Positions 1 through 49,900 of a DNA stretch of 64,000 bases are shown one piece after another. The position numbers and the translations under genes are program-made. Origin of the DNA: Macrostomum hystrix (lineage: Eukaryota > Animalia > Platyhelminthes); NCBI GenBank assembly GCA_950097015.1, contig CATNEN010000011.1, positions 5,146,001-5,210,000 of the forward strand, read 5' to 3'. The notes below the pieces were generated by a model. The model saw only the letters and a program-made list of their open reading frames with translations. It was not told where the DNA came from and searched no databases. Within the stretch, counting starts at the first letter, position 1; each line of letters begins with the position of its first letter.

Positions 1-3000
1 TATTCGATTGGAGCGCACGGTGACAGTTGGCGAGTCGGTTGTTCTGCCCTGCCCGGTTTTGCCAAGCTCTGCAGTTCTTCCTGGCGCCCCTGTAGCCAAG
101 TACCTGGAATGGTCGTTGCCTAGCAACGGATTAACGCCAGTCAAATGTCCGGTCTACCTGATGAAAGACGAGGACGAAGACCCCGGCTGTTCTAGAGAGC
201 TGGACGGTCGCGGGGTGTCTCTTTGGCGTCTCACTCAGCTGCGAGTGCAATCAGCCGAGTTGAGACATGACGGCCTGTACAACTGCTCAGCCTATTGGAA
301 TGAGACCGGAGCGAGTGGCAACGTGTGGCTGCGAGTGCGAGGTAAGGCCTGCAAATCCCCCACCTCCTAGGTGGCTGAACCCTTTTTAAATCCAATGTGG
401 CTGAACCCCTACCTCAAAAACCAAAACGGCTGAACCCCCTTACCCAAATCCAATGTGGCCGAATCCTCACCCTGAAATCCAAGGTAGTCGAACCCCCTTA
501 GACAAATCCAAGGTGGTCGAACCCCCTTACCCAAATCCAAGGTGGCCGAACCCCGTTACCCAAATCCAAGGTGGTCGAGCCCCCTAACCCAAATCCAATG
601 TGGCCGAATCCTCACCCTGAAATCCAAGGTAGTCGAACCCCTTTAGACAAATCCAAGGTGGTCGAAACCCCTTACCCAAATCCAAGGTGGCCGAACCCCG
701 TTACCCAAATCCAAGGTGGTCGAGCCCCCTTACCCAAATCCAAGGTGGCCGAATCCTCACCCTGAAATCCAAGGTAGTCAAACACCTTTTAACAAATCCA
801 AGGTGGTCGAAACCCCTTACCCAAATCAAAGGTGGCCGAACCCCTAGCCCGAAATTTAAAGTGGCCGAACCACCTTACCAAAATCCAAAATCCAAGGTGG
901 CCGAAACCTGACCCTAAAATCCCTAAAGAATGTTCAAGTAGGCGGAAAAACTAAAAAAACTAAAAAAAACTAAAAAACTAAAGAACACTTGGGCAGCTTT
1001 TGGGACCCCCGAAGGAAAAGTATTTTTGGTCATTGTTTAAAACTCAATTCATATCTGAGATAATAATGGACCATTTCTTTCCCTGCTGTTGAGCTACTCA
1101 GGTGATGAAAGATTAGGTACAACCATTGAAACAATGCCCTCCATCTGCGAAAGCTGACCTGTGATTACAGTAATGCCATGCATGCCTTATTCATGCCTTA
1201 TTCAAGCTGCAGCATTCGATTAATGGCAGACTAAAGCCGTATCCTAATCACAAGCCAGAAAATCAGCGAGTCCCGTTCGAGTGCACCTTTTGGCTGTTTC
1301 AATGAAACAGCTCTCAGATTTTAAAAGTTTAATGTTTAATTTCCAAAAAATGCCCCACTAAATTCATCTGCAGAATTGCATTGAGCCTTGACTGAGAGAT
1401 GACTTAACCTTAGCTGATCTTTCCCATTTCACCTCACTTCCTTTCCTTCCCGTTACCCTCCGTTTCTCTCGTCCTATTTCCATTTTCTCTCTTCGGCTTC
1501 CGATTTTCCTTTTTATGTTCCCCTTTCCATACTAATATTTTTCCCCTTTCCATTTTCCTCTTTTTATTCCACTTCCCATTTCCTATCTTTCTTCCCCTTT
1601 CCATTTCCTCTCTTTCTTCCCCTTCCCATTTCCTCTCTTTATTCCCCTTCCCATTTTCCAATTTACATTCCCCTTTCCATTTCCTCTCTTTCTTCCCCTT
1701 CCCATTTCTTCTCTTTCTTCCCCTTCCCATTTTCCACTTTATATTCCCCTTTCCATTTCCTGTCTTTCTTCCCCTTCCCGTTTTCCTAACTTTCTTTCCC
1801 TTCCCATTTCCTCTCTTTTTTTCCCCTTCCCATTTCTTCTTTTTCTTCACCTTCCTATTTTCCACTTTATATTCCCCTTTTCATTTCCTGTTTTTCTTCC
1901 CCTTCCCATTTTCCTAACTTTCTTTCCCTTTCCATTTCCTCTCTTTCTTCCCCTTTCCATTTCCTCTCTTTCTTCCCCTTCCCATTTCTTCTCTTTCTTC
2001 CCCTTCCTATTTCCTCTCTTTCTTCCCCTTACCATTTTCCTCTTTTTATTCCCCTTCCCATTTCTTCTCTTTCTTCCCCTTCCTAAATCCCCTATCTTTC
2101 TTCCCCTTCCTAGTTTATCATTTTCCTCCCTTTCTCTTTCTCCCTTTGCCGGCCTTCTTTAACAATCCCATTCCCTGAGCTCCAGATATTTCAAGCCCAA
2201 AGCTAAAAAGCGCAATTCCCAACTAGCAGACTGTAAAGTCCATCTTTCAAGTTGATCTCTCAAGCCTCCCCGTTTAAAATCACAGCCCCAGAGTGGGGCA
2301 GAGAGTGCCTGTGGGGTCGAATGTGTCAGTCAGCCTATGCCAGCTCTGAGATCTTCTACGGAAGGTTCGACTTTTAATTCCTAGCGTCGCCAGGGGAGTT
2401 GAAATAGGACAAGAAGATGAGGAGTTTCTAGTAGGAAAATTATTCTATAATTTACACGCTCTCGGTGTGTCGGGCGGGGGGGCAAGGGAAGCTGCTTATC
2501 GAGCCGCCCTTAAGCCGTCAAGTCCGGCTTAGTGAAAAAGCTGCACATTTTCCTATTTTTATTCAGTTGCAACGTGCCGACTGGGTAGGTGCCTGACACT
2601 AAAGGACCCGAGACCCAGTATATGTCCCAATATTCACTGACCCGGTGGGCTTAGAGAAGAGGGCTTAAGTAATGGATAAATTATATTGAGTTGATACACA
2701 CTCACACATACACAGGTGTGTACATCTGCCCCAACTCAAACTCAAACACATCAAAATTTATTTTCAGCTCCCCCGTCGGCCCCTCGTCAACTAAAAATCA
2801 CCATGCTGGAGTCGCACTGGCTGGACTTGTCCTGGCAACCGCCTAGCGACCTGAGACACCTGCCTCTGACTGGTTACGAATTAGCAGTAATTAACGGCGA
2901 CTCAACTCGACAATCGGATGAGCAGTTGTCCTGGCTGAATCTTGACCCCGATGCTGAGTCTCACCGGCTGACAGGACTGGCACCGTACACCGAGTACTGC

Positions 3001-6000
3001 CTGCGGCTGCGCGCCAGAAATCAGCTCGGGCCAGGCCGCAGCAGCGAGCTGTGCCGGCTGCGCACGCTGGAAGCTCCACCGAAACCGTCTGCTCTATCCG
3101 CCAGAATCAGCGAGGTCGAAGCCAACAGCGCCAAGCTCATCATCGGCGTTGTACCTTCGGGTCATCCGTCATTGGCTGGCCGGTTGAGACTAGTCCGAGC
3201 CCGATGGCGTCTAGTCAGGCACCTGGAGTCTGGTCTTATCGCCACTCAGGACGATGTCTGGATGGAGAAGAATATCTCAAGAGCGCAGTTTCGGAGCGGT
3301 CGCGGTGGCGGTGGCGAAAATCTGGAAGTTGAACTGGCACTGACAGACCTGCAGGCTTTCAGCGCCTACAGTGTTCACTGCAGCCTGCACAATGGGCGCT
3401 ATGTAGGACAAGAGGCTCTGCTCGCATTTGAAACTTTGGAGGGAGGTAAGTTGGCCCACTGTAGCTGGAGCTGACCCACTGTAGCTGGAGTTGACCCACT
3501 GTAGCTGGAGTTGACCCACTGTAGCTGGAGTTGACCCACTGTAGCTGGAGTTGACCCACTGTAGTAGGAGTTGACCCACTGTAGCTGGAGTTGACCCACT
3601 GTAGCTGGAGTTGACCCACTGTAGCTGGAGTTGACCCACTGTAGCTGGAGTTGACCCACTGTAGCTGGAGTTGACCCACTTTAGGTAGAGTTGACCCACT
3701 TCAGGTAGAGTTGACCCACTTCAGGTAGAGTTGACCCACTTCAGGTAGAGTTGACCCGCTTCAGGTTGAGTTGACTCGATCAGACTAGATGTGCAGCCGA
3801 CAGCACAGCCGCAGCTATTGCGCGGCGCATCTGAAGGCTGCGTACAGCTGTTCAGTCCATGGACTGACGCTAGACGTCACTGGGTGGGGCTGTGGAATTA
3901 TAAATATTGTTATCTGGTAAAGATTCAAACCAGCCTATTGCTACCTGACCTCGTGCATGTTAAAGAGAGTAAAGAAAAAACGCCGTCCCTTTAACAGAGG
4001 CTCCAGCGCCGACGCTGGCCCAGGACACGAACGCCCTATTCGACACCAACGTCAGCCTCTCCTGGACCCGCCTGGCCCGCGTTCCAGGCCACCTGGTCGG
4101 CTATCAGCTGACTGTCCGCGGACCGCACGCCTTCCACCGCGTGTTGAACGTGTCCAGCGAACTCACGCGGCACTGCGTGTCCGGCCTCCAAGCGGCGACC
4201 CGCTACTCCATCAGCGTTGCCGCCGTCACCAGCGGACGAGGCCCCGGACGTCTGTCAAATCGTCTCGATATCGAAACGGAGCCAAGCTGGCCCAGCCGTC
4301 CGTTGGATGTCAGCGTGGACGCGCTCAGCTACTCAGCCGGTGTTCTGGTGTCCTGGTCTGGCCGGCGATTCTCGGTGACTTCGGCCACGGTGGACAGAAC
4401 CTCCTTGGCCTATCCCATCAACCTGCTGCTATTTCGACTGGAGTGGAGGCAGGTTTTTCAGGAATTCGGTAGCTCAATTCAGCAGCGTCGATCGCACCAA
4501 GGCAGGCGGGAGACTCTGGTGCTGAGCCAGCTGGGTCAGTGTCAGCCCAGCTCCAAGTGGCTCGCCCGACCCACCGATGCAGCCGGCGGCAACTTGGAGA
4601 ATCGCGCGACGGAATTAAAGAGGCGAATATGCGTAAGCTTTTGGGCCATATTTCCAGTGTCCCGTAATCCTAGTGAAAAAGTAGATTAGCTGTCCTATCC
4701 TGTCAAAAGTAAAATCCTGTCATATAGCTGGATATTAATCCAGATCTTTTGTCCAGAAAATTAGTTTAAATCCGACCGATTTGTCAGGTTCTGGATTAAA
4801 GTTTAAAAGTTCTAATTACATTTTATAGAAGAGCCAACATATTTCTATTGCAATCGTTTTACATTTTTTTTCACCACGTAGAATTTCAAGATAATATCCA
4901 TGCTATTCCAATACCACGGCCCGCTACCTACCTACTACAGTACACTACTTCTATTACGTCCAACTATAACAAACCAAAAGAGGGTCGGTTGGCAGAGCGG
5001 TTATCGCGTTTGCCTTTTGCACCACGATCCCTGAGTTCGATTCCACGGCGAGGCCACACTTATTTGGGGCGCAGCCGCAGAGAGAAGGCTTGGGGGCTTG
5101 TCGTGCAGTTTACGCCCTTAAGGGCCAGCCTCCAGTGCACAGTGAAAGTGTACACTGCCTGACGATGAGAAATTGAGGGCAGATGTACACCCCTGTGAGA
5201 GCGTATGCCTGCTTACAGTATCTGTGTGCGTGTGTGCACAGGAGTCAGCGAAATGGGCAGAATTGCCTCCTCGCTGGCTGCGGGTCTGAACAAGAAAAGC
5301 ACTGCCATTTACCAACAATAGCTTTGTTAAAGGACTATATATGTAAAGGGTTATGTACTTTCGGCGCAGTGTAGCTCGAGTCTCAAATTTATTACACATA
5401 ACACACTCTCGAATTGCAGCAACATTCCATTGTCCATTGTCTCAATAGGTAGCTTTAGAATGGAGATGAGTAAATTCTGTGAATTCTGAGGCAATCCTTG
5501 AACAGCGGGAAATTATCGCTCTTGCACTTTTATCCGGCTTAGGGTGGGGCCCCGCGTCCTGAAACTATCCAGGAATTAAGAGATCAAGGCAGCCTGAATG
5601 ACAGGCACTGGCGCAAGCCACAATTGTTGTGGCATCTCTGCACGAAAACTGCAGCAGGTGATTGAACGAATGTTGAAGCTATTGAGGATTTGGGCCGGGT
5701 CGGGTGGCAGCAGAAATCGTACTCTCACCTCATGGCAAAGGATTCGAGCTCCTTTTATCTCAGCCTTTTGTGCACCGCCTCACGTTGCAATTCGCGTCTG
5801 TTGTCTGGCCGGCCTTACTAACCCGTGACTAAATATAGCTGGGCTTCTAGAATGCTTTCTGTTCTCAATCGAAATAGATTCATCGATAAGAGCTCGTTAT
5901 TTTCAAGTAATCTTGATTGTCATTAACCTTTAACTATATGCCACTGTTTAACAACAATGCAATCTAGAAATGTAATTTATTTTTATCCTCAATTTACCTG

Positions 6001-9000
6001 TGATTCTATTGATTAAATCTAGTTTTTTCTGCATTTTGCAATCCTTATTTGAACTCTAACTAAAACCTGTCAATCATCAGGAGTTCTTGCCTTGGTCAAC
6101 TGTGATCAGAGCGCTCGGCGTTGGTCCAAAGCTCGACTCCGCGGCGAACCTCAGCTTGGAGTTCTTCGTCACCAGCGTCGGCTTGTCACAATGGGACAGG
6201 GATCGGCGATATCCGGGTCACAGGTCTCTGCCGGTACGCGTCACCGTGCCGGTGTCCACTCTGGTTTTCAACGCGTCCGACTATGCCGACTACGAGAAAG
6301 ACTCTCTTGATGGCGACCCGGTTGTAGCGTCTGGCGATAAACGACGTCACCAAGTGACAACGCGTGTGAGCGTCGGCCTGGGCGTCGGCTGCCTTTTCGC
6401 CGCTTTAGGCATGGCCTCAGCTGGCCTGCTGGCCTGGCAGTGGCTGTGCGGTGACGCCAGGCGTCGAGGCGGTCGAAGCCGCGCTGGTCGGAGCAGGACG
6501 AGGGCTAGGCTCCTGCGAGCTGTGGGCAACCTGGAGCACGGCGGAGCTGAGCGGGCCGAATGTGGGAGTGCTGGTAGGGTAGTCTTTGTAGTTGCCGGTA
6601 GGGTAGTCTTTGTAGATTCTGGTAGGGTAGTATTTGTTTATGTTGGTAGGCTGCTTATTGTAGATGTTTGTAGCATGGTCTTTGTATATGTTTGTAGCAT
6701 GGTCTTTGTAGATTTTTGTAGAATGGTCTTTGTAGATGTTAGTAGGGCGGCCTTTGTAGATGTTGGTAGGGTGGTCAGTGCAGATGTTGATAGGTTAGTC
6801 ATTGTTGATAGTATTGTGGTCAGTGTTGATAGTAGGGTGGTCAGTGTTGATAGTAGGGTGGTCAGTGTTGATAGTAGGGTGGTCTGTGTTGATAGTAGGG
6901 TGGTCTGTGTTGATAGTAGGGTGATCGGTGTTGATAGTAGGGTGATCAGTGTAGATGCTGGTAGGTTGGTCAGTGTTGATAGTAGGGTGGCCAGTGTTGA
7001 TAGTAGGGTGGTCAGTGTTGATAGTAGGGTGGTCAGTGTTGATAGTAGGGTGGTCTGTGTTGATAGTAGGGTGATCGGTGTTGATAGTAGGGTGGTCTGT
7101 GTTGATAGTAGGGTGATCGGTGTTGATAGTAGGGTGATCAGTGTAGATGCTGGTAGGTTGGTCAGTGTTGATAGTATTGTGGTCAGTGTTGATAGTATTG
7201 TGGTCAGTGTTGATAGTAGGGTGGTCAGTGTTGATAGTAGGGTGGTCAGTGTTGATAGTAGGGTGGTCAGTGTTGATAGTATTGTGGTCAGTGTTGATAG
7301 TAGGGTGGTCAGTGTTGATAGTAGGGTGGTCAGTGTTGATAGTAGGGTGGTCAGTGTTGATAGTATTGTGGTCAGTGTTGATAGTAGGGTGGTCAGTGTT
7401 GATAGTATTGTGGTCAGTGTTGATAGTAGGGTGGTCAGTGTTGATAGTAGGGTGGTCAGTGTTGATAGTATTGTGGTCAGTGTTGATAGTATTGTGGTCA
7501 GTGTTGATAGTATTGTGGTCAGTGTTGATAGTATTGTGGTCAGTGTTGATAGTAGGGTGGTCTGTGCAAAATGCTTGTCGACGCAAACTGTGTTTAGACG
7601 AAACCAACACACAGACATCTTGAATCCTCAATCACCCAAAGAACACCAAGATCCTGAGCAGACCTCGGCTCTCCTCGTGAGCGACCCGGCAGCCATGGGC
7701 CTCGCCGACTTTCGAGATCACGTGATTGCCTGTCACGCCAACGATGACGAAGGATTCAGGACCGAGTTCGATGAGCTTCAGCGTTCCGACCCTGTTGTTG
7801 GAGAGACACTTGACAACAGAACACACACTGTCACAGCTGAGAATGAGTATTCTGTGGAAGGCCTTGATAAGGACAAGTCGGCAGTCTTGGCAGCCACTTT
7901 CTGGAGGCTGCCAGAAAACTTAATAAAAAATCGTCACCCAGATGTCTATCCGTGTATGTAAAGTTGGACTTCACATTTTTTATAATTTATGCGGCAATGA
8001 GACATGCTTTGACTGTAAATCTGCCGTTTTTTTAAAACAAATTTAGTCGATCACAGCAGAGTTGTCTTGCACTCAACTCCAACCATCGCAGTGAGCAAGC
8101 GACCGGGTGTTAGCGACTACATCAATGCCAGCTTTGTTCATGTAAGTGGACTAATAAAATAGTGATAATAATTGCAGGAGGGCTGCGGGCAATGGCACAT
8201 CATTTGGTTGACACTAGACCCAATCCCAGCGAGGAGGCAATTCTGCCCATTTCGCTGACTCCTGAGCACACACGCACACGGATACCGTACGCAGGCATAC
8301 GCCCACTCAGGGGTGTACATCTGCCCTCGATTTCTCATCGTCAGGCAGTGTACACTTTCACTGTGCCTTGGAGGTTGGTCCTTAAGGGCGTTAATTTTAG
8401 AACAAGCCCCAAAGACTTCTCTCCGCGGCTGCGACCCAAATGAATGTGGCCTCGCCGCATAACGTGCTAATAATTTAACGTTAATTAAAACAAGTTGAAC
8501 CATTTCATAGACAGTAGGATGTTTTGGCATAATATAGCAATACGATTAGAAAGAAAAATCGGACTTTGGACTCGGACCATGGACTTGCGTACTCCACAGC
8601 CTGCAAAACTTGTATCTATGTCAACTAATTTTGGTACCTATTGTACAGCTGCGTGAACTAAAGCGATCAATAATTAGCGTCTTGATTTTGAGAACAATTG
8701 ATCTCTCAAAGCTCCAACACTTCCCGACAACTCCAATCCTTTCGCAGGGCTATCAGGCGGAGCGAGCCTATATCGCCTGCCAGAGTCCGCTACCCGCCAC
8801 GTTTGACGACTTCTGGCTGATGGTGTGGGAGAACCGGTGCAGCACCATCGTGATGCTGTGCAACCTGGTGGAAGGCGGGCGGGTAATTCAGGGACAAATT
8901 AATCTATGATACTATAAACACTATAAACACATCGTGATTCCGTTATAATAGTATCAAACTAATGCTAATGCATGGTAATATATATCAATACTCAGTTTTT

Positions 9001-16990: not shown

Positions 16991-17350
16991 TACTACTAAT
17001 AATAGTAGTTGCAGGAGGGCTGCGGGCAATGGCACATCATTTGGTGACACTAGACCCGCAGCCTGTGAGGGGGTAATTCCGCCCATTTCGCTGACTCCTG
17101 AGCACACACGCACACATATAAGCAGGTACTCGCTCACACAGGTGTGTACATCTGCCCTGACTTTCTCATCGTTAGTCAGTGTACATTTCACTGTGCCTTG
17201 GAGGTTGGCCCTTAAGGGTGTAAATTGCACGACAAGCCCCCAAGCCTTCTCTCCGCGGCTGCGCCCAAATAAATGCGGCCTCACTGCGGAATCGAACTTA
17301 GGGACCGTGGTGCGAGAGGCAAACGCGTTAACCGCCCTGCCACCGACCCC
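16991..17350 (-). mobile_element. SINE family A, apparently full length
   Basis: Minus strand: GGGGTCGGTGGCAGGGCGGTTAACGCG...AGTTCGATTCC head, central GTACAC/CTGCC hairpin, 3' GGCTGCGGG/CCCGCAGCC stem and an (ACT/ATT)n tail. No target-site duplication recognised. Confidence 0.88.
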
Positions 17351-18308
17351 CAGCGTCTGTTTATTTATTATTAGACCGCAACATAGAACCACATGGGTGA
17401 CAAGCCATAAAATAGTCTTAGATTTAGCGATGCTACAGTTGTTAGAGTGTACGAATGATTAGCAACACCAGAATGGATGGTACAGAAGTTAGATCATGCA
17501 GTCCGAAAATTGCTTTTTGAACGACTTAATTCTGCTTGAAACATGAGCTAATTTCTCTTTTTATGTTAGTTATTCACTACTTATACGAGTAATATAGGTG
17601 AAACTTCGCAAACAAGCATTCGATTCGTAAATAAAGTCACAAGAAAGCAAGCAAACAAACAGAAACCTAATTTAATGCACGCGTTTTTATTTTTAGCTGT
17701 CAGCTTTTTTATAAGCGTGCTCAGAATCAAATGGGAACTAACGGCTTAAGTTTAAACGTCCGAATCCGTTTTAAGTGCAGGCGCACTTAGCAGAAAAAAA
17801 TGCTTTTTGAATTGCGCCGTAAGGAAAAAATATTAGTAGTAGTACTTAGTGGTATAGTAGTAATTTGAATTAGTATTGCTAGTAATAGTATAAGTAGTAG
17901 TAATAAGTAGTATTAGTAGTAGAGTACTTATGTTTATTCCAAATGCCCGCTAAAACGTGTTAGATGCAGACAGTTTGAGAACTATTAGGAATAATATTTT
18001 TAGAGAGCGAGAGACCCACTGAAATTATTTTATCAGAAGACAACACAGACTTAAAATGCCAAATTATCTGCGCCTACGAAAAATGCTGTGCTAAATGTAC
18101 TCATGGGCAAGACGGATAATTGTAAATATTTACGAGATGAAGATAAAAATACTCCACTAGAAAACATTATAATAGTAAGGGTCATTGTGTGGCAAGAGCT
18201 CTCTGATATCTAGTCCAAAAACAGCAGCTTTTGGCTGGTTATGACAGGAATAAAACGTCATTTGTTGCTATTAAGGCACTTTTTGGCACAAGAAATTTAA
18301 GCGACACA

Positions 18309-21300
18309 ATGGAGTATGCAGAAGAAGTTACAGACGACGAAATTATCAAGACAATCAAATCCAATGACGTACAAGCCTTTGAAAGTATCATTTCGAAAAG
18401 ACGAAACATGGAGAACTTCGTTTGTTATCTTGGCAAAGAGTACACACCGACAATGCTGGCGAGCGCGTTTGGACAAATTGACATCTTGAAGGTGTTAATT
18501 CGAGCAAATGTCAACTTGAATCGGCAAAACAAAGAAGGAGTATCAGCACTTTACATCGCCTCATTTCGAGGACATTATCAAGTGGTCGAGTTACTGATCA
18601 AGTCGCAAGCCGACATCGATATTCAGACAGACATTGGTAAATCGCCGTTGTACATAGCTGCGCAGCAAGGAAATAAAAAAGTGGTTGACTCTCTCTTAAA
18701 AGCACAAGCCAATGTTGATCTTCAACGAAACTACGCTTGTTCGCCCATCTACATCGCATCGCAGGAGGGGCAACACGAAGTGGTGGAGGCACTCATCAAG
18801 GCACAAGCCGACCTTAATCTTGTTTCACATATCGGCTCGACAGCTGTATATGTTGCATCGCTGAATAATAATTATCAGGTGGTGCACAGGCTAATCAATG
18901 CACAGGCCGACGTCAACCTTTCAGACTTCGACGGGTGCTCACCTCTTTACATGGCTTCTCAAGAAGGTCACCATCGCGTTGTGGATGCACTTATCAAAGG
19001 GCATGCCGACATTGATCTTCAGAACTCAAGCGGTTGCTCACCTCTTTATATTGCATCAGGGCAAAACCGTCACGTTGTTGTCGAGAAACTTATTAAGGCT
19101 CGCGCGGATATCAGCCTAACGAATTCCCTAGGCAAAACGGCCCTGGATATTGCGTCCCAAAACGGTCATCAATATGTCGTTGAGTTGCTCTTAAAGCACA
19201 TGTCCTCTGAGATGAAATCAAATGATTTATGTCGAAGTTCAATTGAACTTGCCCTGAACAGAGCGCGTGAGTTCGAGCATCACCGCGTCGTCGAAGTGCT
19301 TCGTCTCTTCCTGGATGCTGCTTCGTCACCAGTCACATTCGAGTCAATGACTGAGACGTAAGTTGTATTGCACATTAGTTTTGCATATAGGTCACGTTTT
19401 TAGGGGTTTAGGAATTGAACAATTTCAAAAAATTTCGTGGTGCATTGCTGTGACCAACTGACTTTTCGAGGGATGATACTTTGATGAAAAAATGCATACA
19501 ACGCAATTTCATTCGGTAACCACCCGCAGGTCGGACGAAGTTGAGCTGAGCCTGCAGCTGCACACTGCTCTATGTGAATCAGGATTCGTGCGTGCCAGGG
19601 CCTCCGTTCAGAGCGCTTTGGCTGATGTTCTGGAGGATATCTTCACGAGAAGGGAGAAAACTGACAAATGCTTCGTCGTTGGCAGCTACTCTGAGGGATG
19701 GGGCAACAGTCTGCTTACTCTGAACGGCACAACTAGTACGGATTCGGACATAGACGTGATGAAGCTGATTCCGGGAGAGCCTTTCCATTTAAAGGGCTTT
19801 TGCTGCTGCGTTGGGATCGAAGCTCCCAAAATGGACTACTGCAACGGACACATTCTTTGCAAAGGATTCGGTGAGTCTGTTGCCAAGGAAACACGAAGAA
19901 ACGGACTTGGAGATGAGAAAGGTATTGCTTGTTATCGAGGGGTAAGTGGCAGAGCAGTTAACGGGTTCTAAGGTCCCTGAGCTCAATTTCGAAAGGAGGC
20001 GACATTTGGCCCGCAGTCACGAAGAGAGGGAGTTTGTCGTGCAATTTACGCCTTTGTAAGGCTGACCTCCAAGGTAAAGTGAAGTGTATACTGCCTGACG
20101 ATAAGAAAGTCATGGTTGCCGTACACGCCTGTGTGTGTGTGTCTGTGTGTCTGTATTGACTAAATATTAATTTAGTCAATAAATTATTTGATTTATTCGA
20201 AGAGCAGTAATATATACATTTATTATTAGAATCATTTTAGCCACGATTTTAGAGCGTCGGAATCACGGCTGTAGGTCGCGAGTTCGATTACCGAATGTTG
20301 GGAGTTTGATTCTCGACTTCGATGGAACAATTTGCGCACTTAAGCAAGACACTTAAAATTTGTATTGCTTCAGTTCATCCAGCTGTTAAATGTGTACCAG
20401 CATCAGCTGCGGTAATTGAGGGTGGGTGTGGCGCCCCACCTGGGTCCAGGGTCTTGAACAGACGTATACGCAATCTTCGGATGCGGCTGCGGCTGTGCTG
20501 TCGGCTGCACATTCGGGCCGAATCGGGGCTGCAACTATAACAGACACTGGGATTCAGAAAGCTCCGTTCCCCCATTTCAGCCTCGAACCCAGCACGCACA
20601 TTTCCGGGTTTCCCGCCGAGGCCAACGATTGACGATGTCTCCGCCCGCCGCCTCTGCTGCTATCCAGCCATCGCTTCGCTGCAGCCTGAAAGAGTTACCC
20701 AGTCTCACATTCCCCAATGTGTGCTGCAGTCACTTCGAGACAAGCTAACCTCGGAGCTCTCGCCATGTCATGTTGTTCACGCAGCTGCACCCGGAATGAG
20801 GGGCCAGCAGCTGCGGGTGAGCACGAGCCTGCTAGAGAGGCAGCTGATGCGCAGTCTCAACACAGAGCAGGGCCAGTGCTTCACCGTGCTAAAGTGGTTG
20901 CTAAAGTTTGCTACTAAATTTGATGGTTTCAAGACTTATCACGCGAAGACCATTACGTTTCAAATGCTTGAAGAGACGCCAGTGGAGCAGTGGAAGCCAG
21001 AGAATCTTGTAAGTCTTGTGCGACGCTCGTTGCAAATGCTCCTAGATGGCATAGAGTGCGCTTCCAGTACATCCACTGACGGACGAATAATGAATCACTT
21101 CTTTTTAATGGACGCTCAGGTGTATTTAAAAGGTATTGAGCTCACATCAGCTGATTCACGGCAAGTTTTAATTAGCGCAGCGCTTGCATTGAGAGATGTG
21201 ACAGAGTATCTGCCTCGTTTGCTGATTCAATTCAAGCAAAATTTGCAACCTATCACCGATTCGGGTAGATTCTACTTTCATCCGCTTCTAACTGCATCAA

Positions 21301-22052
21301 TTGTTTCATTTTCTTACAACGCCATTAGCACAGGCACAGCGAAATGCGCCTACCATGAAATCCTTGACTTGGTGGCGAATGTGATGCGTCTCTTGCATGA
21401 CGAGGGCAGAGGCGCTCCATCCTTAGAGTCTCTAACAAAACTGATTGACCAACTGCCTGACAGTGCACGTTCTGCTCGAGAGTCTCTCAGAGCTCTTGCC
21501 TACCTGAAGTACAGCAATAAAGAGGCTGCTTTAAAAGTCGTCATCGACTCGAGAAGCTTCAGCGTGAACAGAGGCATTGATTTCCCCGCTGATGAATCGA
21601 TTTGCGAAGCAACCCTTGAGTCAGTCTGGAAAATCGTCGAAAACTCGGACTCGGCATGGAAGCTCTGTCTTTGGCTCAATAAAAAAGTTGAATTTCCGAT
21701 CAGACACAAACTCGTTGCGGACGTCTTCAGTCTGAGAGTGAAAAACTACATCGGATTCTTTTATATGAACTTCGACGCCCTCCTGCACGCCCTTCGTTTC
21801 GAGCTTGCCGGAGTACAAGATGCGCTCGACCAGGCCTGGATTCGGGATGTTGCGGTGCGACAGGACGCAGACGAGCAGGAGCTGGTGGTGGCTGCTACTA
21901 ACTGTGAGAATCTGGAACTGTTGCGGCTGCTGCGAAGAAGAAGTGCCAATGTTTTCGGCGACGTGCCGCCCTGGCTAGAGGAGAAGGTTGAGAACTTGCT
22001 TCGCACTGAGAGCGAACAAACATGCTTTAATATATATTTACTGAAACCTTGA
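18309..22052 (+). CDS. Ankyrin-repeat + Mab-21/cGAS-like nucleotidyltransferase (ANK-cGLR) fusion, 953 aa
   Basis: Exons 18309-19357 (AC|GTAAGT), 19530-19870 (CGCAG|G ... G|GTGAGT) and 20581-22052 (CCCATTTCAG|CC) total 2862 nt in frame. Eight canonical ANK repeats plus caps; NTase motif VVGSYSEG...DSDIDVM; third acidic position in RPTIDDVSA; Mab-21 C-lobe LRVSTSLLERQLM...FKTYHAKT...W...MNHFF. Confidence 0.85.
19998..20155 (+). mobile_element. SINE family A, degenerate internal fragment in cGLR intron 2
   Basis: TTGTCGTGCAATTTACGCC...GTGTATACTGCCTGACGATAAGAAAGTCA matches the family A body. Confidence 0.7.
20239..20514 (+). mobile_element. SINE family B in cGLR intron 2
   Basis: tRNA-like head (TAGAGCGTCGGAATCACGG...GAGTTCGATT), GCAAGACACTT...TTGCTTCAGTTCATCCAGCTGTTAAATG body, and GCGGCTGTGCTGTCGGCTGCACA 3' end. 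Confidence 0.78.
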
Positions 22053-22134
22053 AAACTATACCGTAGGATGTCAGTTTAGAATATATGGTTATAAGTTTTA
22101 CAGCCGTAGTTTTTTTAGTTTTTAGGATAGCTTG

Positions 22135-23115: not shown

Positions 23116-25203
23116 TCATTGATATTGAGCAGCGTCAGCCGCCTCAGCAGTGCCAGTCGCCACTCCAATTCGCGGATGTTTCAGCCAGGCGTGTGGGATC
23201 GGTACTGGCAGCTGGCTGACAATACGAGATCCGCGACGTTTGTTTGAGTCTTTTTTCGATTGCATCGAGGGCTGGGCGAGGGGCGGCAGAATCAGCGGCA
23301 ACAGTTGGGATGGTGACGATTCTGATTGGTCCGGCAAGACTTCGGAAGTGAGCATGTACTTGCTTAAATCCTCCTCTACCAAATCATCGCTACTTGAACT
23401 ATTGCCGCTGCTTCGAATAGCCTCGATGTCACCCTTGTTACTCCTGTTGTACATCATTTCGTTCAATTTGTTACTCTCTTCGATGGTCGCGTCTTCTTCT
23501 GACGATTTTCCCTCACTGCCACCAGACTCCTCCGTGTTGGCTGCGTTGGTCATGACTGTCTTCATTGACTCCCTGGGGAACACCATCCGGTCCATGTAAT
23601 ATTTGTTAGTGGGATCGTCTCGACCTTCGCCTCGTTGTCGCTTGCCACCGATAATTGTGCCTACAGCCTTCAACTCTTCGCCTTTCTCCATAGTTACGTA
23701 TTTGGTGATGTTCTTATCGTTGCACATTAGCATTTGGGTGAGCACAGCTTGATCTTGCAGGTCATTCAGCGCCCGAATTTCTCGATCCAAGCGTTCCTCG
23801 GTGAAAAAGCTAGCTAGCTCGTGGCGCTGCTCTATGACAGTGATTCGGGCACATTCACGCACAAAGGCGAACACTTCGGGCTGAAAGCGGACTTTTTCAG
23901 CGTCATCCAGGCCAATAAAGTAGTCCTTGAACTCCAGGTCGCTGATGATATCAAAATAGTTTAGCCAGCCCGCGTCAGACAGCAGTTTGACAACAACGCG
24001 TATAACTACACCAAAAGTTTGCATTTTGGCCAGCCTGTAGCACTTGGCCAATAGACCCACCAGCAACGCTATGCAGCAGTCGGCATCGAATTCAAACAGC
24101 GCTTGTGGCCATTCTTCATTGATGGCTCGGCTTCGCTTCCGGTAAATAGGGATCGTCTCGAGCCGCTTGCGCCGCCCTGGACGCGCTTTGAACGGCATGG
24201 CCGGGTCGCCGATTAACTTGAAGATGCCCATGTTGATAAACTGAGCAGCAGAACGCACGAGGTTGGACGTGGACTTGAGCTTCTTGTCAGCGTAGAATGC
24301 GCAGCGAAGTAGCCGTCGAGGATAACTTTTGCAGTTGTTGATTATTCGCTCAGGATCTCGGAGTAGAGTCATACGGTTCGCTCGAGTGGGCTGGCACATG
24401 TAGTTGAAGCGGAAATGTTGAGTTGGACATTTGAGAACAGCTGAGCATAAGCTGGGAATGTCAAGGGAGCTGCGCTTATTAAACATCAGGTAAAAAGCGT
24501 ACTCCATGAAGTCGTCAAAGTTCAGGTAGGTTTCAACGAAGCGTTTTCGATATACTTGAACGAACGGCTCCATGGGAAACCAGTTTTCGTACTGAAGCAT
24601 TGTCCTCAGAATGTCGTAGGTCTCATTGAGCATGGCCAGGTTATGGTCGTACATGCACATTAGATCGCCAAATCGCTCGCTCATATGGCTGATAAACTGC
24701 GGCTGACGGGCCATGATGAGCTTTTTGTTTGTGTCGCGGTCGATACAACTCACTAAGATGGCCGCGGCTTTAGGCTTGCGCAGATAGATGGCAAGACCCA
24801 GGGGCGTCAAGTACATTACCGCGTGCCGGTTGAACAACGGATCTCGGTCCTCCGAATAGTATTCCGGCCTATCCAATACCTGGAAGTACTTTGATTTTGT
24901 GATGATAAACTCTTTCTTGCCTTCGATCACTGTCTGATTGGCTTGTATTGCTCGCTGGTCAGGCAGAAATCTTAGAAGACCTTTAGATTCTTTGCCAATC
25001 AGTGCGCGAGAAAGCTCTTTCTCGCTCTCAGACTTGATCACATTGACAAGCCATGTGGTTGTCGGATGATTGATATCAAAGAATCTAGGCACTTTGTAGT
25101 AGACGTTTTCTGACTTCTTCACATCTTTACCAAGCTTAAGGTTGGTGTACGCCTTCTGCCGGAAGAACATCGGATCCGGCACTCTTATGTTACCCCGCGT
25201 CAT
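23116..25203 (-). CDS. Uncharacterised intronless 695-aa protein (one ankyrin-like motif, basic cluster, acidic/Ser-rich tail)
   Basis: Long non-repetitive ORF with ATG start; TTTTTCTGTAG acceptor ~21 nt upstream of the ATG; LTPLGLAIYLRKPKAAAILV resembles one ANK unit; no family recognised. Confidence 0.8.
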   Translation of the reverse strand: MTRGNIRVPDPMFFRQKAYTNLKLGKDVKKSENVYYKVPRFFDINHPTTTWLVNVIKSESEKELSRALIGKESKGLLRFLPDQRAIQANQTVIEGKKEFIITKSKYFQVLDRPEYYSEDRDPLFNRHAVMYLTPLGLAIYLRKPKAAAILVSCIDRDTNKKLIMARQPQFISHMSERFGDLMCMYDHNLAMLNETYDILRTMLQYENWFPMEPFVQVYRKRFVETYLNFDDFMEYAFYLMFNKRSSLDIPSLCSAVLKCPTQHFRFNYMCQPTRANRMTLLRDPERIINNCKSYPRRLLRCAFYADKKLKSTSNLVRSAAQFINMGIFKLIGDPAMPFKARPGRRKRLETIPIYRKRSRAINEEWPQALFEFDADCCIALLVGLLAKCYRLAKMQTFGVVIRVVVKLLSDAGWLNYFDIISDLEFKDYFIGLDDAEKVRFQPEVFAFVRECARITVIEQRHELASFFTEERLDREIRALNDLQDQAVLTQMLMCNDKNITKYVTMEKGEELKAVGTIIGGKRQRGEGRDDPTNKYYMDRMVFPRESMKTVMTNAANTEESGGSEGKSSEEDATIEESNKLNEMMYNRSNKGDIEAIRSSGNSSSSDDLVEEDLSKYMLTSEVLPDQSESSPSQLLPLILPPLAQPSMQSKKDSNKRRGSRIVSQLPVPIPHAWLKHPRIGVATGTAEAADAAQYQ

Positions 25204-26650: not shown

Positions 26651-26888
26651 GGTTGTAGCCAAGCCTAGTGGTTAGGGCGTCAGACTCATAACTTGAAGGC
26701 TGGGGGTTCAATTCCAGACTCTATTAGAAAAATATGTGTCTTTTAGCAGAACACTTAACTCTGCATTGCTTCAGTTCACCTAGCTGTTAAATGGATACCA
26801 GCATTAGCTAGGATAATTAAAGGTGGGTGTGGCATCCCCTGAGTCCATGGACTGAACAGTTGTAGGCCTACACAGCTTTCAGATGCCT
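26651..26888 (+). mobile_element. SINE family B, tRNA-Met-like head
   Basis: GGTTGTAGCC...TAGTGGTTAGGGCGTCAGACTCATAACTTGAAGGCTGGGGGTTCAATTCC, then the family B body with GTCCATGGACTG. Confidence 0.82.
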
Positions 26889-41650: not shown

Positions 41651-42776
41651 GTTAGCCGATGCAACATTTTGTGTCTTAAAAAGGATTTTTTGACAAAGGC
41701 TCACAGCATTATTGGGGCCAAAACACGCAGCAGCTTTAGTTAGCAGAGAGGAGAGCGGAGAGAGGAGAGAGAGATATGGGATGAGGTCAGGAGAACTGGC
41801 AGCATTGTTAGATTAGCTTTAAGCCATGTATCACCGCAGCAACTTGTGCTTTAAACTTGCCATAGCCGCCTAACACACACACACACACACACTCACACAC
41901 CTGAGCTGAACACGTGAATTGCCAATACCGCACTTAGTGCCCAGCAAGGTATTGCTCCGTGACGCAGTCGTGCAAGAGAATGGAAAGTCAAAGTCAGCCC
42001 ATGGAGCGGGCTGCTGTTTAATAAAATGCAAGGACAGGAAATTGCTGGTAAAAGTGCTTTATAATTAGCCGCATGAATACGACTGCAGGCATTGCTAGCA
42101 GTGCAAAACACGTGCAACCCAACACAATCACCTGTTGGCTTAGGCTATTAATATTTTACGGCATATATTAATCTGAGAGCTGATCAGATAAGATATCCCA
42201 TGGTGGGACAGTTTTGCATCATCGTAGCCGCTCGAATTGTGAATATTTACATATTACGAGCTATTATTTTCCAACACTTCCCCAATCTTGACCGTTCGAT
42301 AAATTAAACTCAAGCAAAAGATAAGCATTCTTCTGATTAACTCCCTGTTACGAGTGTTTTTTCATCTGCAAAACACATAATACATGCATTTGCTACGCAT
42401 TCTAATACTTTTTAACCGGGTAAGTAGTATGCAATGAATACGAGCAAATTTTTCTTTAAACGTCGAAAAAAAGAAAAAAGTACAAGTAATTGCCGTATCC
42501 ACTGTAAAAAGGAACTACTGATAGCCCCAATTAGAACGTTTTAAAAACTTTTTTAGTAAAGTGCCTATGAGACTGGAAATAAGGTAATATATTTCAATGG
42601 AAACACTTTAGTGCGCGCAGCTCTTTATAAAACCTCCTTGCCAGCAGTGAAATTTTCCCAACCAATGGGAAAACATCTCGAAATTCACCCCCAGTACTGT
42701 CGAATTGATTCTTGCCAATCATGCTCAAACCGACCTCCCCACTCCGCTCCCTAAGCCTCAGACCGTCTCAGCCGAA

Positions 42777-44378
42777 ATGCTGTACGTTCCCTCGTACATG
42801 AGCCCAAGTTATGGCGGCGGCGGCGGCAGCGGAGGGCGACATCATCTGCTAGACGATGACCGATCCAACAGCATCCTCGGCGGTGGCACCGGGGTCGGTG
42901 GCATGATCGGCTGGCAGCAGGGGGCGCAGACCTCCTTTCTTAACCGCCCCGGGCTTCGGCACGGCTACTCAAAGAAGCGCAGGAAGAAGGGCATCATTGT
43001 TTCCTCAGCCGCTTCGTCGTCAGCGGGCCATCACCAGGTGCGCTTCGAGCCTCGAGTGTCTCACCTGCCCAGGCCGCATCGGCAGCGTCTACAAAATCGG
43101 CACAGCGGCGGCGACAAAGACTCCGAGGACAAAGACTCCGAGGACAATGACGCCGAAACTGAAGATGCCGACCACAACGACCGACTGCTTGCTTCGACTC
43201 CTTCGCGAGTGCGTCTTGCGTCTCCTGTTAGTGGGTTTCACGACTGCCACCTGCTGGGCTGCGAGCGGGTGCGCCTGAATGTGTCCGGGATGCACTTTGA
43301 AACGCGGCTGGGCGTCCTGAACCAGCACCCCAGGACTCTTCTGGGCAACCCGCAGAAGCGAGCTCGCTATTATGATCCGCGGCATCGCGAATACTTCCTT
43401 GACAGGCACCGGCCAACCTTTGAAGCCGTGTTCAATTACTACCTGTACGGTGGCAAGCTCAAACGGCCGCCAACAGTTACAGACGACATCTTCCTCTCCG
43501 AGCTGGAGTTCTACGAAATCGAGCGGGAAGTTATCGACGCCTACAAGAAGGACGAGGGCTACATCTCCGAGACAGTCGTGCTGCCCGAGCATCCGGTCAA
43601 GCGTCGGGTCTGGATGCTGTTCGAGTACCCCGAGACAAGCACACCAGCATTTTTCGTAGCCATCGTCTCCGTCCTGTTCACCGTCGTGTCCATCATTCTG
43701 TTCTGCGTTGAGACGCTGAAAGAGTTCAAAGACTCGCACTGCGTCAGCCATGAGCTGCCCAACTTCCTTGACCCGTTCTTCATCATTGAGAGCGCCTGCA
43801 CCGCTTGGTTCACCTTCGAGCTGCTGATTCGCTTCAGCGTCTGCCCATCCAAGCAGGTCTTCATCAAGGATATGAAGAACGCGGTGGATTTCTCAGCGAT
43901 CGTACCGTACTATGTGACCCTCACCAATGTGCTCATCACAATGAGCTGCGAGGGTGCCAAGTCGAGCGCCTCCCTAGCATTCCTGCGCGTGGTCCGTCTG
44001 ATCCGAGTGTTCAAACTCACCAAACACTTTGACGGCCTGCAAGTCCTGGTCCTGACCTTCCGAGCCAGCATCGAGGGCCTGGGCCTGTTCCTAGTAGCCC
44101 TGATAGTCTGCATCCTGCTGTTCTCGTCAACCATCTACTATGTGGAGAGCGAGGTTCGCGGCTCCCAGATTGAGAGCATCCCAGATGCGTTCTGGTGGGC
44201 GGTGATCACAATGTGCACCGTCGGGTATGGCGACAAGGTGCCGAAGGGTCCGCTGGGCAAGCTGGTTGGCTCTGTGTGCGCGGTGGCTGGAGTCCTGACC
44301 CTGGCCATTCCTGTGCCCATCATCACCGAGAACTTCAACAAATTCTACACACACAAGACTGGCCGCGGAAGGCACTGA
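42777..44378 (+). CDS. Shaker: Shaker-family (Kv1) voltage-gated potassium channel alpha subunit, single coding exon
   Basis: T1 domain (ERVRLNVSGMHFET...HPRTLLGN...EYFLDRHRPTF), VWMLFEYPE, S1-S6, S4 LRVVRLIRVFKLTKH, pore PDAFWWAVITMCTVGYGD, S6 LAIPVPII. First ATG of the ORF taken as start; a 5' exon cannot be excluded. Confidence 0.95.
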   Translation: MLYVPSYMSPSYGGGGGSGGRHHLLDDDRSNSILGGGTGVGGMIGWQQGAQTSFLNRPGLRHGYSKKRRKKGIIVSSAASSSAGHHQVRFEPRVSHLPRPHRQRLQNRHSGGDKDSEDKDSEDNDAETEDADHNDRLLASTPSRVRLASPVSGFHDCHLLGCERVRLNVSGMHFETRLGVLNQHPRTLLGNPQKRARYYDPRHREYFLDRHRPTFEAVFNYYLYGGKLKRPPTVTDDIFLSELEFYEIEREVIDAYKKDEGYISETVVLPEHPVKRRVWMLFEYPETSTPAFFVAIVSVLFTVVSIILFCVETLKEFKDSHCVSHELPNFLDPFFIIESACTAWFTFELLIRFSVCPSKQVFIKDMKNAVDFSAIVPYYVTLTNVLITMSCEGAKSSASLAFLRVVRLIRVFKLTKHFDGLQVLVLTFRASIEGLGLFLVALIVCILLFSSTIYYVESEVRGSQIESIPDAFWWAVITMCTVGYGDKVPKGPLGKLVGSVCAVAGVLTLAIPVPIITENFNKFYTHKTGRGRH

Positions 44379-47121: not shown

Positions 47122-49026
47122 GGTTGTAGCCTTAGTTGTTAGAGCGTCGGACTCACGAAGGTCGGGGGTTCGATTCCCGACTCCACTGGAACAATTTGTA
47201 TCCTTTAGCAAGACACTTGAACTCTGCATGGCTTCAGTTCACCAAGCTGTGAAAAATGGGTACCAGCATAAGCTGGGGTAGTTAAGGTTGGGTTTGGCAT
47301 TCCCCCAGTCCATGGACTGAACAGCCGTACAGGAGGGGTAGATTGGGGAGACACTGGAGGGGTAGATTGGGGAGACACTGGAGGGGTAGATTGGGGAAAC
47401 ACAGGAGGGGTAGATTGGGGAGACACAGGAGGGGTAGATAGGGGAGAAATATATAAGGGTAGATTGGGGAGACACAGGAGGGGTAGATTGGGGAGAAATA
47501 GATGAGCGGTAGATTGGGGAGACACAGGAGGGGTAGATTGGGGAGAAATAGATGAGGGTAGATTCGGGAAACACAGGAGGGGTAGATTAGAGAGACACAG
47601 GAGGGGTAGATATGGGAGAAATAGATGAGCGGTAGATTGGGGAGACACAAGAGGGGTAGATTGGGGAAACACAGGAGGGGTAGATTGGGGAGACACAGGA
47701 GGGGTAGATTGGGGAGACACAGGAGGGGTAGATTGAGGAGACACTGGAGGGGTAGATTGGGGAAACACAGGAGGGGTAGATTGGGGAGACACAGGAGGGG
47801 TAGATTGGGGAGACACAGGAGGGGTAGATTGGGGAGACACAGGAGGGGTAGATTGGGGAGACACAGGAGGGGTAGATTGGGGAGACACAGGAGGGGTAGA
47901 TTGGGGAGACACAGGAGGGGTAGATTGGGGAGACACAGGAGGGTAGATTGGGGAGACACAGGAGGGGTAGATTGGGGAGACACAGGATGGGTAGATTGGG
48001 GAGACACAGGAGGGGTAGATAGGGGAGAAATAGATGAGCGGTAGATTGGGGAGACACAGGAGGGGTAGATTGGGGAGACACAGGAGGGGTAGATTGGGGA
48101 GACACAGGAGGGGTAGATTGGGGAGACACAGGAGGGTAGATTGGGGAGACACAGGAGGGGTAGATTGGGGAGACACAGGATGGGTAGATTGGGGAGACAC
48201 AGGAGGGGTAGATAGGGGAGAAATAGATGAGCGGTAGATTGGGGAGACACAAGAGGGGTAGATTGGGGAAACACAGGAGGGGTAGATTGGGGAGACACAG
48301 GAGGGGTAGATTGGGGAGACACAGGAGGGGTAGATTGAGGAGACACTGGAGGGGTAGATTGGGGAGACACAGGAGGGGTAGATTGGGGAGACACAGGAGG
48401 GGTAGATTGGGGAGACACAGGAGGGGTAGATTGGGGAGACACAGGAGGGGTAGATTGGGGAGACACAGGAGGGGTAGATTGGGGAGACACAGGAGGGGTA
48501 GATTGGGGAGACACAGGAGGGGTAGATTGGGGAGACACAGGAGGGTAGATTGGGGAGACACAGGAGGGGTAGATTGGGGAGACACAGGATGGGTAGATTG
48601 GGGAGACACAGGAGGGGTAGATAGGGGAGAAATAGATGAGCGGTAGATTGGGGAGACACAGGAGGGGTAGATTGGGGAGACACAGGAGGGGTAGATTGGG
48701 GAGACACAGGAGGGGTAGATTGGGGAGACACAGGAGGGTAGATTGGGGAGACACAGGAGGGGTTGATTGGGGAGACACAGGAGGGGTAGATTGGGGAGAC
48801 ACAGGAGGGGTAGATTGGGGAGACACAGGAGGGGTAGATTGGGGAGACACAGGAGGGGTAGATAGGGGAGAAATAGATGAGCGGTAGATTGGGGAGACAC
48901 AGGAGGGGTAGATTGGGGAGACACAGGAGGGGTAGATTGGGGAGACACAGGAGGGTAGATTGGGGAGACACAGGAGGGGTTGATTGGGGAAAGGAAAATT
49001 GCGGCTGTGCTGTCGGCTGCGCATCT
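47122..49026 (+). mobile_element. SINE family B split by a satellite (5' part 47122-47330, 3' end 48999-49026)
   Basis: Head and body through CAGTCCATGGACTGAACAGCCGTAC, then the array, then GCGGCTGTGCTGTCGGCTGCGCATCT. Confidence 0.82.
47329..48990. repeat. 24-nt G-rich satellite, reverse complement of the 44580-45270 array, with a 602-bp internal duplication
   Basis: ACAGGAGGGGTAGATTGGGGAGAC units; near-identical ORF pairs at 47625/48227 and 48034/48636. Confidence 0.95.
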
Positions 49027-49641: not shown

Positions 49642-49900
49642 TAGTGACACTAGACCCGCCGCCAGCGAGGAGGCAATTCTGCCCATTTCGCTGACTCCTG
49701 AGCACACACTCACACAGTTGTGCCCTGACCTTCTCATCGTCAGGCAGTGTACACTCTCACTGTGCCTCGGAGGTTGGCCCTCAAGGGCGTAAATTGCACG
49801 ACAAGCCCCCAAGCCTTCTCTCCGCGGCTGCAGCCCAAATGAATGTGGCCTCGCCGCGGAATCGAACTCAGGGACCTTGGTGCGAGAGGTAAATGCATCG
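49642..49900 (-). mobile_element. SINE family A
   Basis: GACACTAGACCCGCC...GCGGAATCGAACTCAGGGACCTTGGTGCGAGAGG matches the family A consensus. Confidence 0.85.

Follow-up and report, generated by a model that had tools for sequence, protein, structure and literature searches.

The stretch of Macrostomum hystrix DNA analysed here (64,000 nt of contig CATNEN010000011.1; hereafter the window, meaning that stretch at its full length) carries, at positions 18309-22052 of the forward strand, three seemingly separate reading frames that are one spliced gene. The gene is intact and expressed, and its product combines an N-terminal ankyrin (ANK) repeat array with a nucleotidyltransferase (NTase) core of the cGAS/Mab-21 type and a C-terminal tail, the layout of a cGAS-like receptor (cGLR) fused to ankyrin repeats. 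Exons 18309-19357, 19530-19870 and 20581-22052 are joined via canonical GT..AG introns into a single frame, giving a spliced coding sequence of 2862 nt that specifies 953 aa without an internal stop. The main frame opens with the ATG at 18309 and, if left unspliced, stops at the TAA at 19359-19361, which falls within the first donor (GAGAC/GTAAGT after 19357, with the slash marking the splice; acceptor CGCAG/G at 19530). The second intron lies between the donor TTCG/GTGAGT after 19870 and the acceptor TTTCAG/CC at 20581. An earlier reading of the letters (the original prediction) had proposed the stop codon inside a perfect donor, the position and phase of both junctions and a 953-aa product, and all of these coordinates check out. 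Expression was followed in four public runs of one study with 100% identity to the stretch, from which the contigs labelled X1, X2 and X4 below are taken. The features of the gene are as follows, with ankyrin repeat borders taken from the translation.

18213-18308, + strand: transcribed 5´ leader, minimum extent (RNA-like contigs start at 18213 in X2 and 18225 in X4)
18309-19357, + strand: exon 1, coding for the N-terminus, ankyrin array, degenerate cap and short linker, residues 1-350 (translation, Pfam)
18438-19226, + strand: eight 33-residue ankyrin repeats, residues 44-306 (PF00023, eight stretches, E 1.9e-51; PF12796, E 4.7e-53)
19358-19529, + strand: intron 1, 172 nt, GT..AG, phase 2, containing the TAA that ends the unspliced open reading frame (ORF) of exon 1 (spliced X1 contig; zero depth in the intron in all runs)
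19530-19870, + strand: exon 2, coding for the NTase spine helices, GS loop and DxD strand, residues 350-464 (X1, X2 and X4 contigs over 19622-19870)
19681-19686, + strand: G401-S402 (G in 55 and S in 54 of 56 family cores)
19747-19755, + strand: D423-I-D425, catalytic acids 1 and 2, with D423 at 19747 and D425 at 19753 (D in 53 and 52 of 56 family cores, respectively)
19871-20580, + strand: intron 2, 710 nt, GT..AG, phase 1, with two dispersed repeats inside (homologues read across the junction; not seen spliced in the runs)
20581-22052, + strand: exon 3, coding for the remaining NTase core, the Mab-21 C-lobe and the tail, with the stop TGA at 22050-22052 (translation, Pfam; contigs over 20959-22106)
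20631-20633, + strand: D481, catalytic acid 3, in IDDV; family motif RPAxDxV (D in 51 of 56 family cores)
20874-21077, + strand: Mab-21 HhH/H2TH-like C-lobe segment, residues 562-629, with invariant K568 and Y583-H-A-K586 (PF20266, E 3.9e-5)
20937-20951, + strand: YHAKT motif (sequence)
21261-22049, + strand: family-specific tail with approximate borders (about residues 691-953), predominantly helices plus a few short strands (AlphaFold model)
22053-22106, + strand: 3´ untranslated region, minimum extent (X2 contig over 21924-22106)

Splicing and expression of the gene

We treated the four runs as RNA-like because their contig coverage is exon-shaped: contigs cover the exons as well as the 3´ end of the neighbouring gene, and none were obtained for the upstream spacer or for non-repeated intron sequence. 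At the first junction (19357/19530), a GT..AG joint was detected in an X1 contig (depth 4.8; shorter side 55 letters), the binned depths around the junction were wholly accounted for by exon sequence, and intron 1 was free of coverage in all four runs. Both junctions are also crossed by homologues from Macrostomum lignano, which pass the second one gap-free, as in P0006 ('...NGHIQCSGFASNPAS...' against '...NGHILCKGFASNPAR...' in the model). Over nearly its whole length (residues 46-936) the model is collinear with residues 212-1103 of the M. lignano protein P0161 (PAA80291.1, 1117 aa), at 49% identity and with an E value of 0, far beyond chance, and the N-terminus can be aligned with M. lignano relatives from residue 4 on.

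A further joint, at 18725/19038 within the ankyrin repeats (CG..GC; shorter side 22 letters; 15 foreign letters between), was dismissed as a paralogue or repeat mis-lay. The transcribed leader contains an out-of-frame upstream ORF of 19 codons (18252-18311, + strand, ATG at about 18252) whose TAA overlaps the main ATG. The two dispersed repeats of intron 2 are old, with 70-77% identity to other copies in the window; the one at 19939-20142 recurs at 5028-5197, 8304-8442, 17135-17350 and 49704-49878, and the one at 20292-20488 at 26695-26859, 47156-47329 and 56745-56943. Coverage by the RNA-like contigs was very deep (~360-1080x) at 20218-20591, the bins in which the second of these repeats lies. 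No tRNA gene was detected in either intron 2 repeat.

The nucleotidyltransferase core and its family

Residues 351 to ~690 constitute a cGAS/Mab-21-type NTase core. The catalytic motifs had been placed by the original prediction at 19681 (GS), 19747/19753 (D-x-D) and about 20631 (the third acid, in IDDV), together with YHAKT, and each was recovered at its position, the third acid at exactly 20631. A profile built from 56 family cores and run against PDB sequences matched mouse and human cGAS (down to E 5.8e-13), cGLR1 (1.2e-10), Mab21L1 (7.6e-6) and MB21D2 (5.5e-5), with MiD51 also among the matches; of the 49 PDB sequences with a match at E <= 1, none was an OAS chain. The window protein retains all 28 of the family positions conserved at 90% or more, including G401, S402, D423, D425, D481, K568, Y583 and K586. 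In the HMMER alignment, the segments around K568, Y583 and K586 correspond to LMKYL and SYHVKT of mouse cGAS, which we take to hold triphosphate- and base-contacting residues. Pfam matches were obtained for Ank and, at threshold, for Mab-21_C (PF20266 on exon 3, 24.2 bits against a cut-off of 24.1), but PF03281, which the original prediction had suggested as a check, gave no match on exon 2 or exon 3 searched separately. The core is split over these two exons; the 113-aa piece encoded by exon 2 was without any Pfam match at E <= 1, and PF03281 was not listed for exon 3.

The fold was tested on the core of the closest relative, P0161:519-806, which is 61% identical to the window core and was modelled (predicted local distance difference test score, pLDDT, 90.1; predicted template modelling score, pTM, 0.90). 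This model matched human cGAS at Z 16.1 (234 residues, root-mean-square deviation 3.7), Crassostrea virginica Cv-cGLR1 at Z 16.0 and MB21D2 at Z 15.3, with the matches spanning the whole model (residues 1-288), and Foldseek gave E 1.8e-8. Its top 50 fold matches were all cGAS, cGLR or MB21D2, with none from OAS, and the equivalent of D481 sits on the strand at 130-138. The NTase fold anticipated from cGAS and cGLR1 was thus found, at Z ~16, on the core of P0161, and the claim of a cGAS/Mab-21-type enzyme with an intact GS/DxD/D triad is borne out by the family profile, the fold of the relative and the 28 conserved positions. The bilobal Pol-beta-type fold (on the nearest relative), the GS/DxD/D motif and the Mab-21 sequence homology together identify a cGLR; the closest sequence and fold relatives are not OAS.

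Compared with human and mouse cGAS and Cv-cGLR1 (PDB 7ftr, 4k9b and 8gjw), the bilobal fold is shared at Z 16 over 230-243 residues (root-mean-square deviation 3.7-3.8, on the relative's core model), as are the catalytic triad and the C-lobe Lys and Tyr-His-x-Lys aligned to LMKYL and SYHVKT. Identity to these enzymes is, however, just 15-24%, the window protein has a short insert (56 residues) from the DxD strand to the third Asp, and the core is near neutral (isoelectric point 6.7) rather than basic. In addition, cGAS has neither the N-terminal ankyrin array nor the ~260-aa tail.

Macrostomum-type worms are an exception, with a large expansion of ANK-cGLRs: in an exhaustive search with exon 3, 50 protein clusters reached E <= 1e-30 and a total of 218 reached E <= 0.001. 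The named clusters looked up were all from M. lignano, and a few unnamed ones came from metagenomes. Because ankyrin repeats were found in all eight of the long relatives scanned, in each case N-terminal to the region homologous to exon 3, we take the ANK-cGLR architecture to be the norm of the family; Mab-21_C was matched in six of the eight at E <= 0.01. The M. lignano proteins (e.g. PAA80291.1 and PAA45980.1, the latter being P0176) share with the window protein the order of array, core and tail, as well as the motifs GS[FY]xEGWG...SDIDV and RPAxDxV. They differ from it in species and in their N-terminal regions and lengths, which vary widely (886-1378 aa) and are to be set against the eight ankyrin repeats of the window protein, and a 1:1 orthologue is not evident. 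The core shares 57-61% identity with the closest relatives, against 36-48% for the ankyrin array and 40-50% for the tail, a pattern that fits a conserved enzyme with accessory parts that may have changed faster. A maximum-likelihood tree of the cores groups the window protein with a clade of five M. lignano members as its sister (94/93); both fall within a well-supported subfamily of 19 rows (98/97), as would fit lineage-specific gene birth and loss. A tblastn search with the model found no paralogue in the window. Two M. lignano relatives, P0072 (PAA59752.1) and P0183 (PAA80948.1), continue after the core and tail with more ankyrin repeats and end in a caspase domain (PF00656, E ~2e-25); if these gene models are right, such a cGLR-caspase fusion would connect the family to cell-death signalling.

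Fusions of this kind have been reported. In a survey of ~3,000 animal cGLRs, 87% were single-domain proteins, and fusions to TPR or to ankyrin repeats occurred in some (Li et al., 2023, bioRxiv 10.1101/2023.02.22.529553, PMC9980059). Its Table S2 lists several M. lignano proteins with Ank_2 (PAA45980.1, PAA86972.1, PAA68676.1, PAA67649.1, PAA58690.1 and PAA68216.1), which agrees with the caution in the original prediction that the architecture might not be unprecedented. According to Table S3 of the same study, PAA86972.1, PAA45980.1 and PAA68676.1 were cloned, as numbers 89, 90 and 93, for a biochemical screen (Li et al., 2023, PMC9980059). PAA45980.1 (number 90) falls in the P0046 cluster of the family described here and is the sole one of the three clones confirmed as a member. 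The ANK-cGLR family and its architecture were therefore already catalogued in Macrostomum in 2023 and are not new; the window gene is a further, second-species member. As a single gene it adds little to the published catalogue; it does show that the family, with intact catalytic residues, is common to a second species and is expressed there.

Outside Macrostomum, the combination of a cGLR core with ankyrin repeats is also found in the ANK- and death-domain-fused cGLRs of Stylophora pistillata (Li et al., 2023, Fig. 4C, PMC9980059), which belong to another phylum and are likened here by architecture and not by sequence comparison. Their ankyrin repeats were proposed to be ligand- or protein-interaction modules, with no function reported (Li et al., 2023, PMC9980059). 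A literature search returned no ligand or product assigned to any ANK-fused cGLR.

Accessory regions, proposed signalling and alternatives

The eight ankyrin repeats claimed for exon 1 correspond to the eight stretches found by PF00023, and the tandem 33-residue repeats identify the model as an ankyrin-repeat protein. The array is followed by a degenerate capping repeat and then by a linker of ~12 residues to the spine helices of the NTase. Conservation of the tail (~260 aa) extends to 30 relatives, among which some N and D residues are invariant. An AlphaFold model of 21084-22049 reached a pLDDT of 79.8 (> 85 through most of its second half), and its mostly helical content agrees with the helical C-terminal extension that had been predicted. 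We found no recognised fold for the tail: Foldseek against PDB gave no convincing match (best E 0.33), the best VIA-align wide matches (up to Z 8.1, to a designed helical protein and to TPR/14-3-3-like repeats) were within the noise for helical models, ESM Atlas shape matches stayed at TM <= 0.42, recognition in the ESM Atlas feature search was below threshold, and a PDB sequence-profile search returned no matches at E <= 10. Descent of the tail from a duplicated C-lobe was considered and rejected, as a comparison of tail and core profiles gave only nine residues, which had been made to overlap deliberately.

An immune sensor-synthase function of this ANK-cGLR is a reasonable inference. Once activated, the core would condense nucleoside triphosphates into a second messenger, with a cyclic di- or oligonucleotide as the most likely product. 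In cGAS, the N-terminal spine helices control the active site and DNA binding is relayed through them. Only ~12 residues separate the ankyrin array from the corresponding helices, and the array may serve as a ligand-sensing or autoinhibitory module that acts on the active site by a similar relay. Nucleic-acid sensing has been tied to basic cGLRs (Li et al., 2023, PMC9980059); as the window core is not basic, the ligand would more probably be a protein or another non-nucleic-acid molecule. The signal might be read by soluble double-STING proteins, and the tail might mediate oligomerisation, assembly or partner binding. The ten longest ORFs of the window include no STING-like effector, in agreement with the original prediction.

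Taken as a whole, we consider it probable that the locus is an intact, expressed three-exon gene for a 953-aa member of the Macrostomum ankyrin-cGLRs, whose core would make a nucleotide second messenger, with an ankyrin array that would sense or autoinhibit and STING as the predicted reader of the signal. A more specific version, in which the array is a receptor for a non-nucleic-acid ligand (a pathogen protein or one released by stress) that switches the core via the spine helices, the tail is a new oligomerisation or partner-docking domain and the product is read by soluble double-STING, is offered tentatively and is doubtful as it stands. If true, a cGLR pathway that responds to protein would exist in a phylum from which cGLR-STING signalling is believed to have mostly disappeared. 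The near-neutral core, the tightly tethered ankyrin array and the conserved tail without a recognised fold make this family a reasonable place to seek cGLRs that sense something other than nucleic acid.

Several observations weigh against the main reading of the locus. The first splice junction was seen in one contig of one run, of a type that is not on record, and the spliced form of the second (19870/20581) was not seen in the RNA of any run, such that the junctions put forward in the original prediction were recovered at 19357/19530 but not at 19870/20581. At the latter, one contig of X1 breaks off right at 19870 and one of X4 passes the donor unspliced up to 19939, the start of a dispersed repeat. 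As the X4 contig ends where the repeat begins, we interpret it as unspliced RNA cut short by the repeat; the alternative donor near 19941 that it hints at would put exon 3 out of frame, with a stop soon after, and was rejected. The N-terminal Mab-21 Pfam model finds nothing on exon 2 alone, and the fold test was carried out on the core of a relative and not on the spliced core of the window protein itself. The 15 active enzymes studied in depth (01-15) do not include the M. lignano clones 89, 90 and 93 (Li et al., 2023, PMC9980059); these clones may need the ankyrin array, the tail or a ligand. Finally, the roles assigned to the ankyrin array and the tail, as well as the link to STING, are pure inference.

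That the M. lignano clones are not among the 15 active enzymes studied in depth (Li et al., 2023, PMC9980059) would be in keeping with the protein being a catalytically silent Mab-21-like scaffold that keeps the fold, serves as an adaptor like Mab21L1/2 or MiD51, uses the ankyrin array and tail as interaction platforms and emits no nucleotide signal, and both Mab21L1 and MiD51 are indeed among the PDB matches of the family profile. The best sequence and fold matches, however, are the active enzymes cGAS and cGLR1, not Mab21L1 or MiD51, and the triad, together with the Lys and Tyr that contact the nucleotide, is retained in >= 90% of the 56 family cores as well as in the window protein, which would be hard to account for without catalysis. 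We consider a silent scaffold unlikely. Much less probable is an OAS-like enzyme that makes linear 2´-5´ oligoadenylates (2-5A) and binds its own product through the ankyrin array. Such an enzyme would share the NTase superfamily with the window protein, and RNase L binds 2-5A through ankyrin repeats, but the search of solved structures gave cGAS, cGLR1, Mab21L1, MB21D2 and MiD51 and no OAS at E <= 1, the 50 best fold matches belong without exception to cGAS, cGLR or MB21D2, and Pfam found no RNase or kinase-like domain. The OAS - RNase L pathway, in which an NTase-superfamily synthase and an ankyrin array likewise serve one antiviral pathway, is a functional analogy only: there the array is on the effector RNase L and not on the synthase, and OAS is not among the listed sequence or fold matches of the window family. 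The idea that the array binds the product in the manner of RNase L has no specific support beyond the shared type of domain.

The same locus could in principle hold two genes, an ankyrin protein that ends at TAA 19361 and a cGLR that starts at ATG 19492, with the fusion an artefact of splice sites read into the sequence. In favour of such an arrangement, ATG 19492 shares the frame of exon 2, and the joint occurs in a single contig. This joint is, however, exact and canonical, the intron is without coverage, the alignment to P0161 crosses the junction, N-terminal ankyrin repeats are present in 8/8 long relatives scanned, and the gap between the two supposed genes would be just 130 nt. Given the X1 splice joint, the empty intron 1 and the collinear homologues, two separate genes are very unlikely, the least probable of the explanations considered.

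Other features of the window

Adjoining the cGLR gene on the opposite strand is a 695-aa ORF without a Pfam match (23116-25203, - strand), a well-expressed orphan whose 3´ end reached ~70x depth, with 2.5-kb contigs in three of the four runs. Further along, an intact single-ORF Shaker-type voltage-gated K+ channel (42705-44375, + strand; BTB_2 and Ion_trans) is 80% identical to its M. lignano orthologue and 62-75% identical to the proteins of the other flatworms, molluscs and annelids listed, which places the source as a free-living Macrostomum-type flatworm distinct from M. lignano. Upstream of the cGLR gene are two ORFs, each probably an exon of another gene: one (2716-3471, + strand) has a fibronectin type III domain (E 7e-14), and the other, of 624 aa (6087-7958, + strand), matched a coiled coil only weakly.

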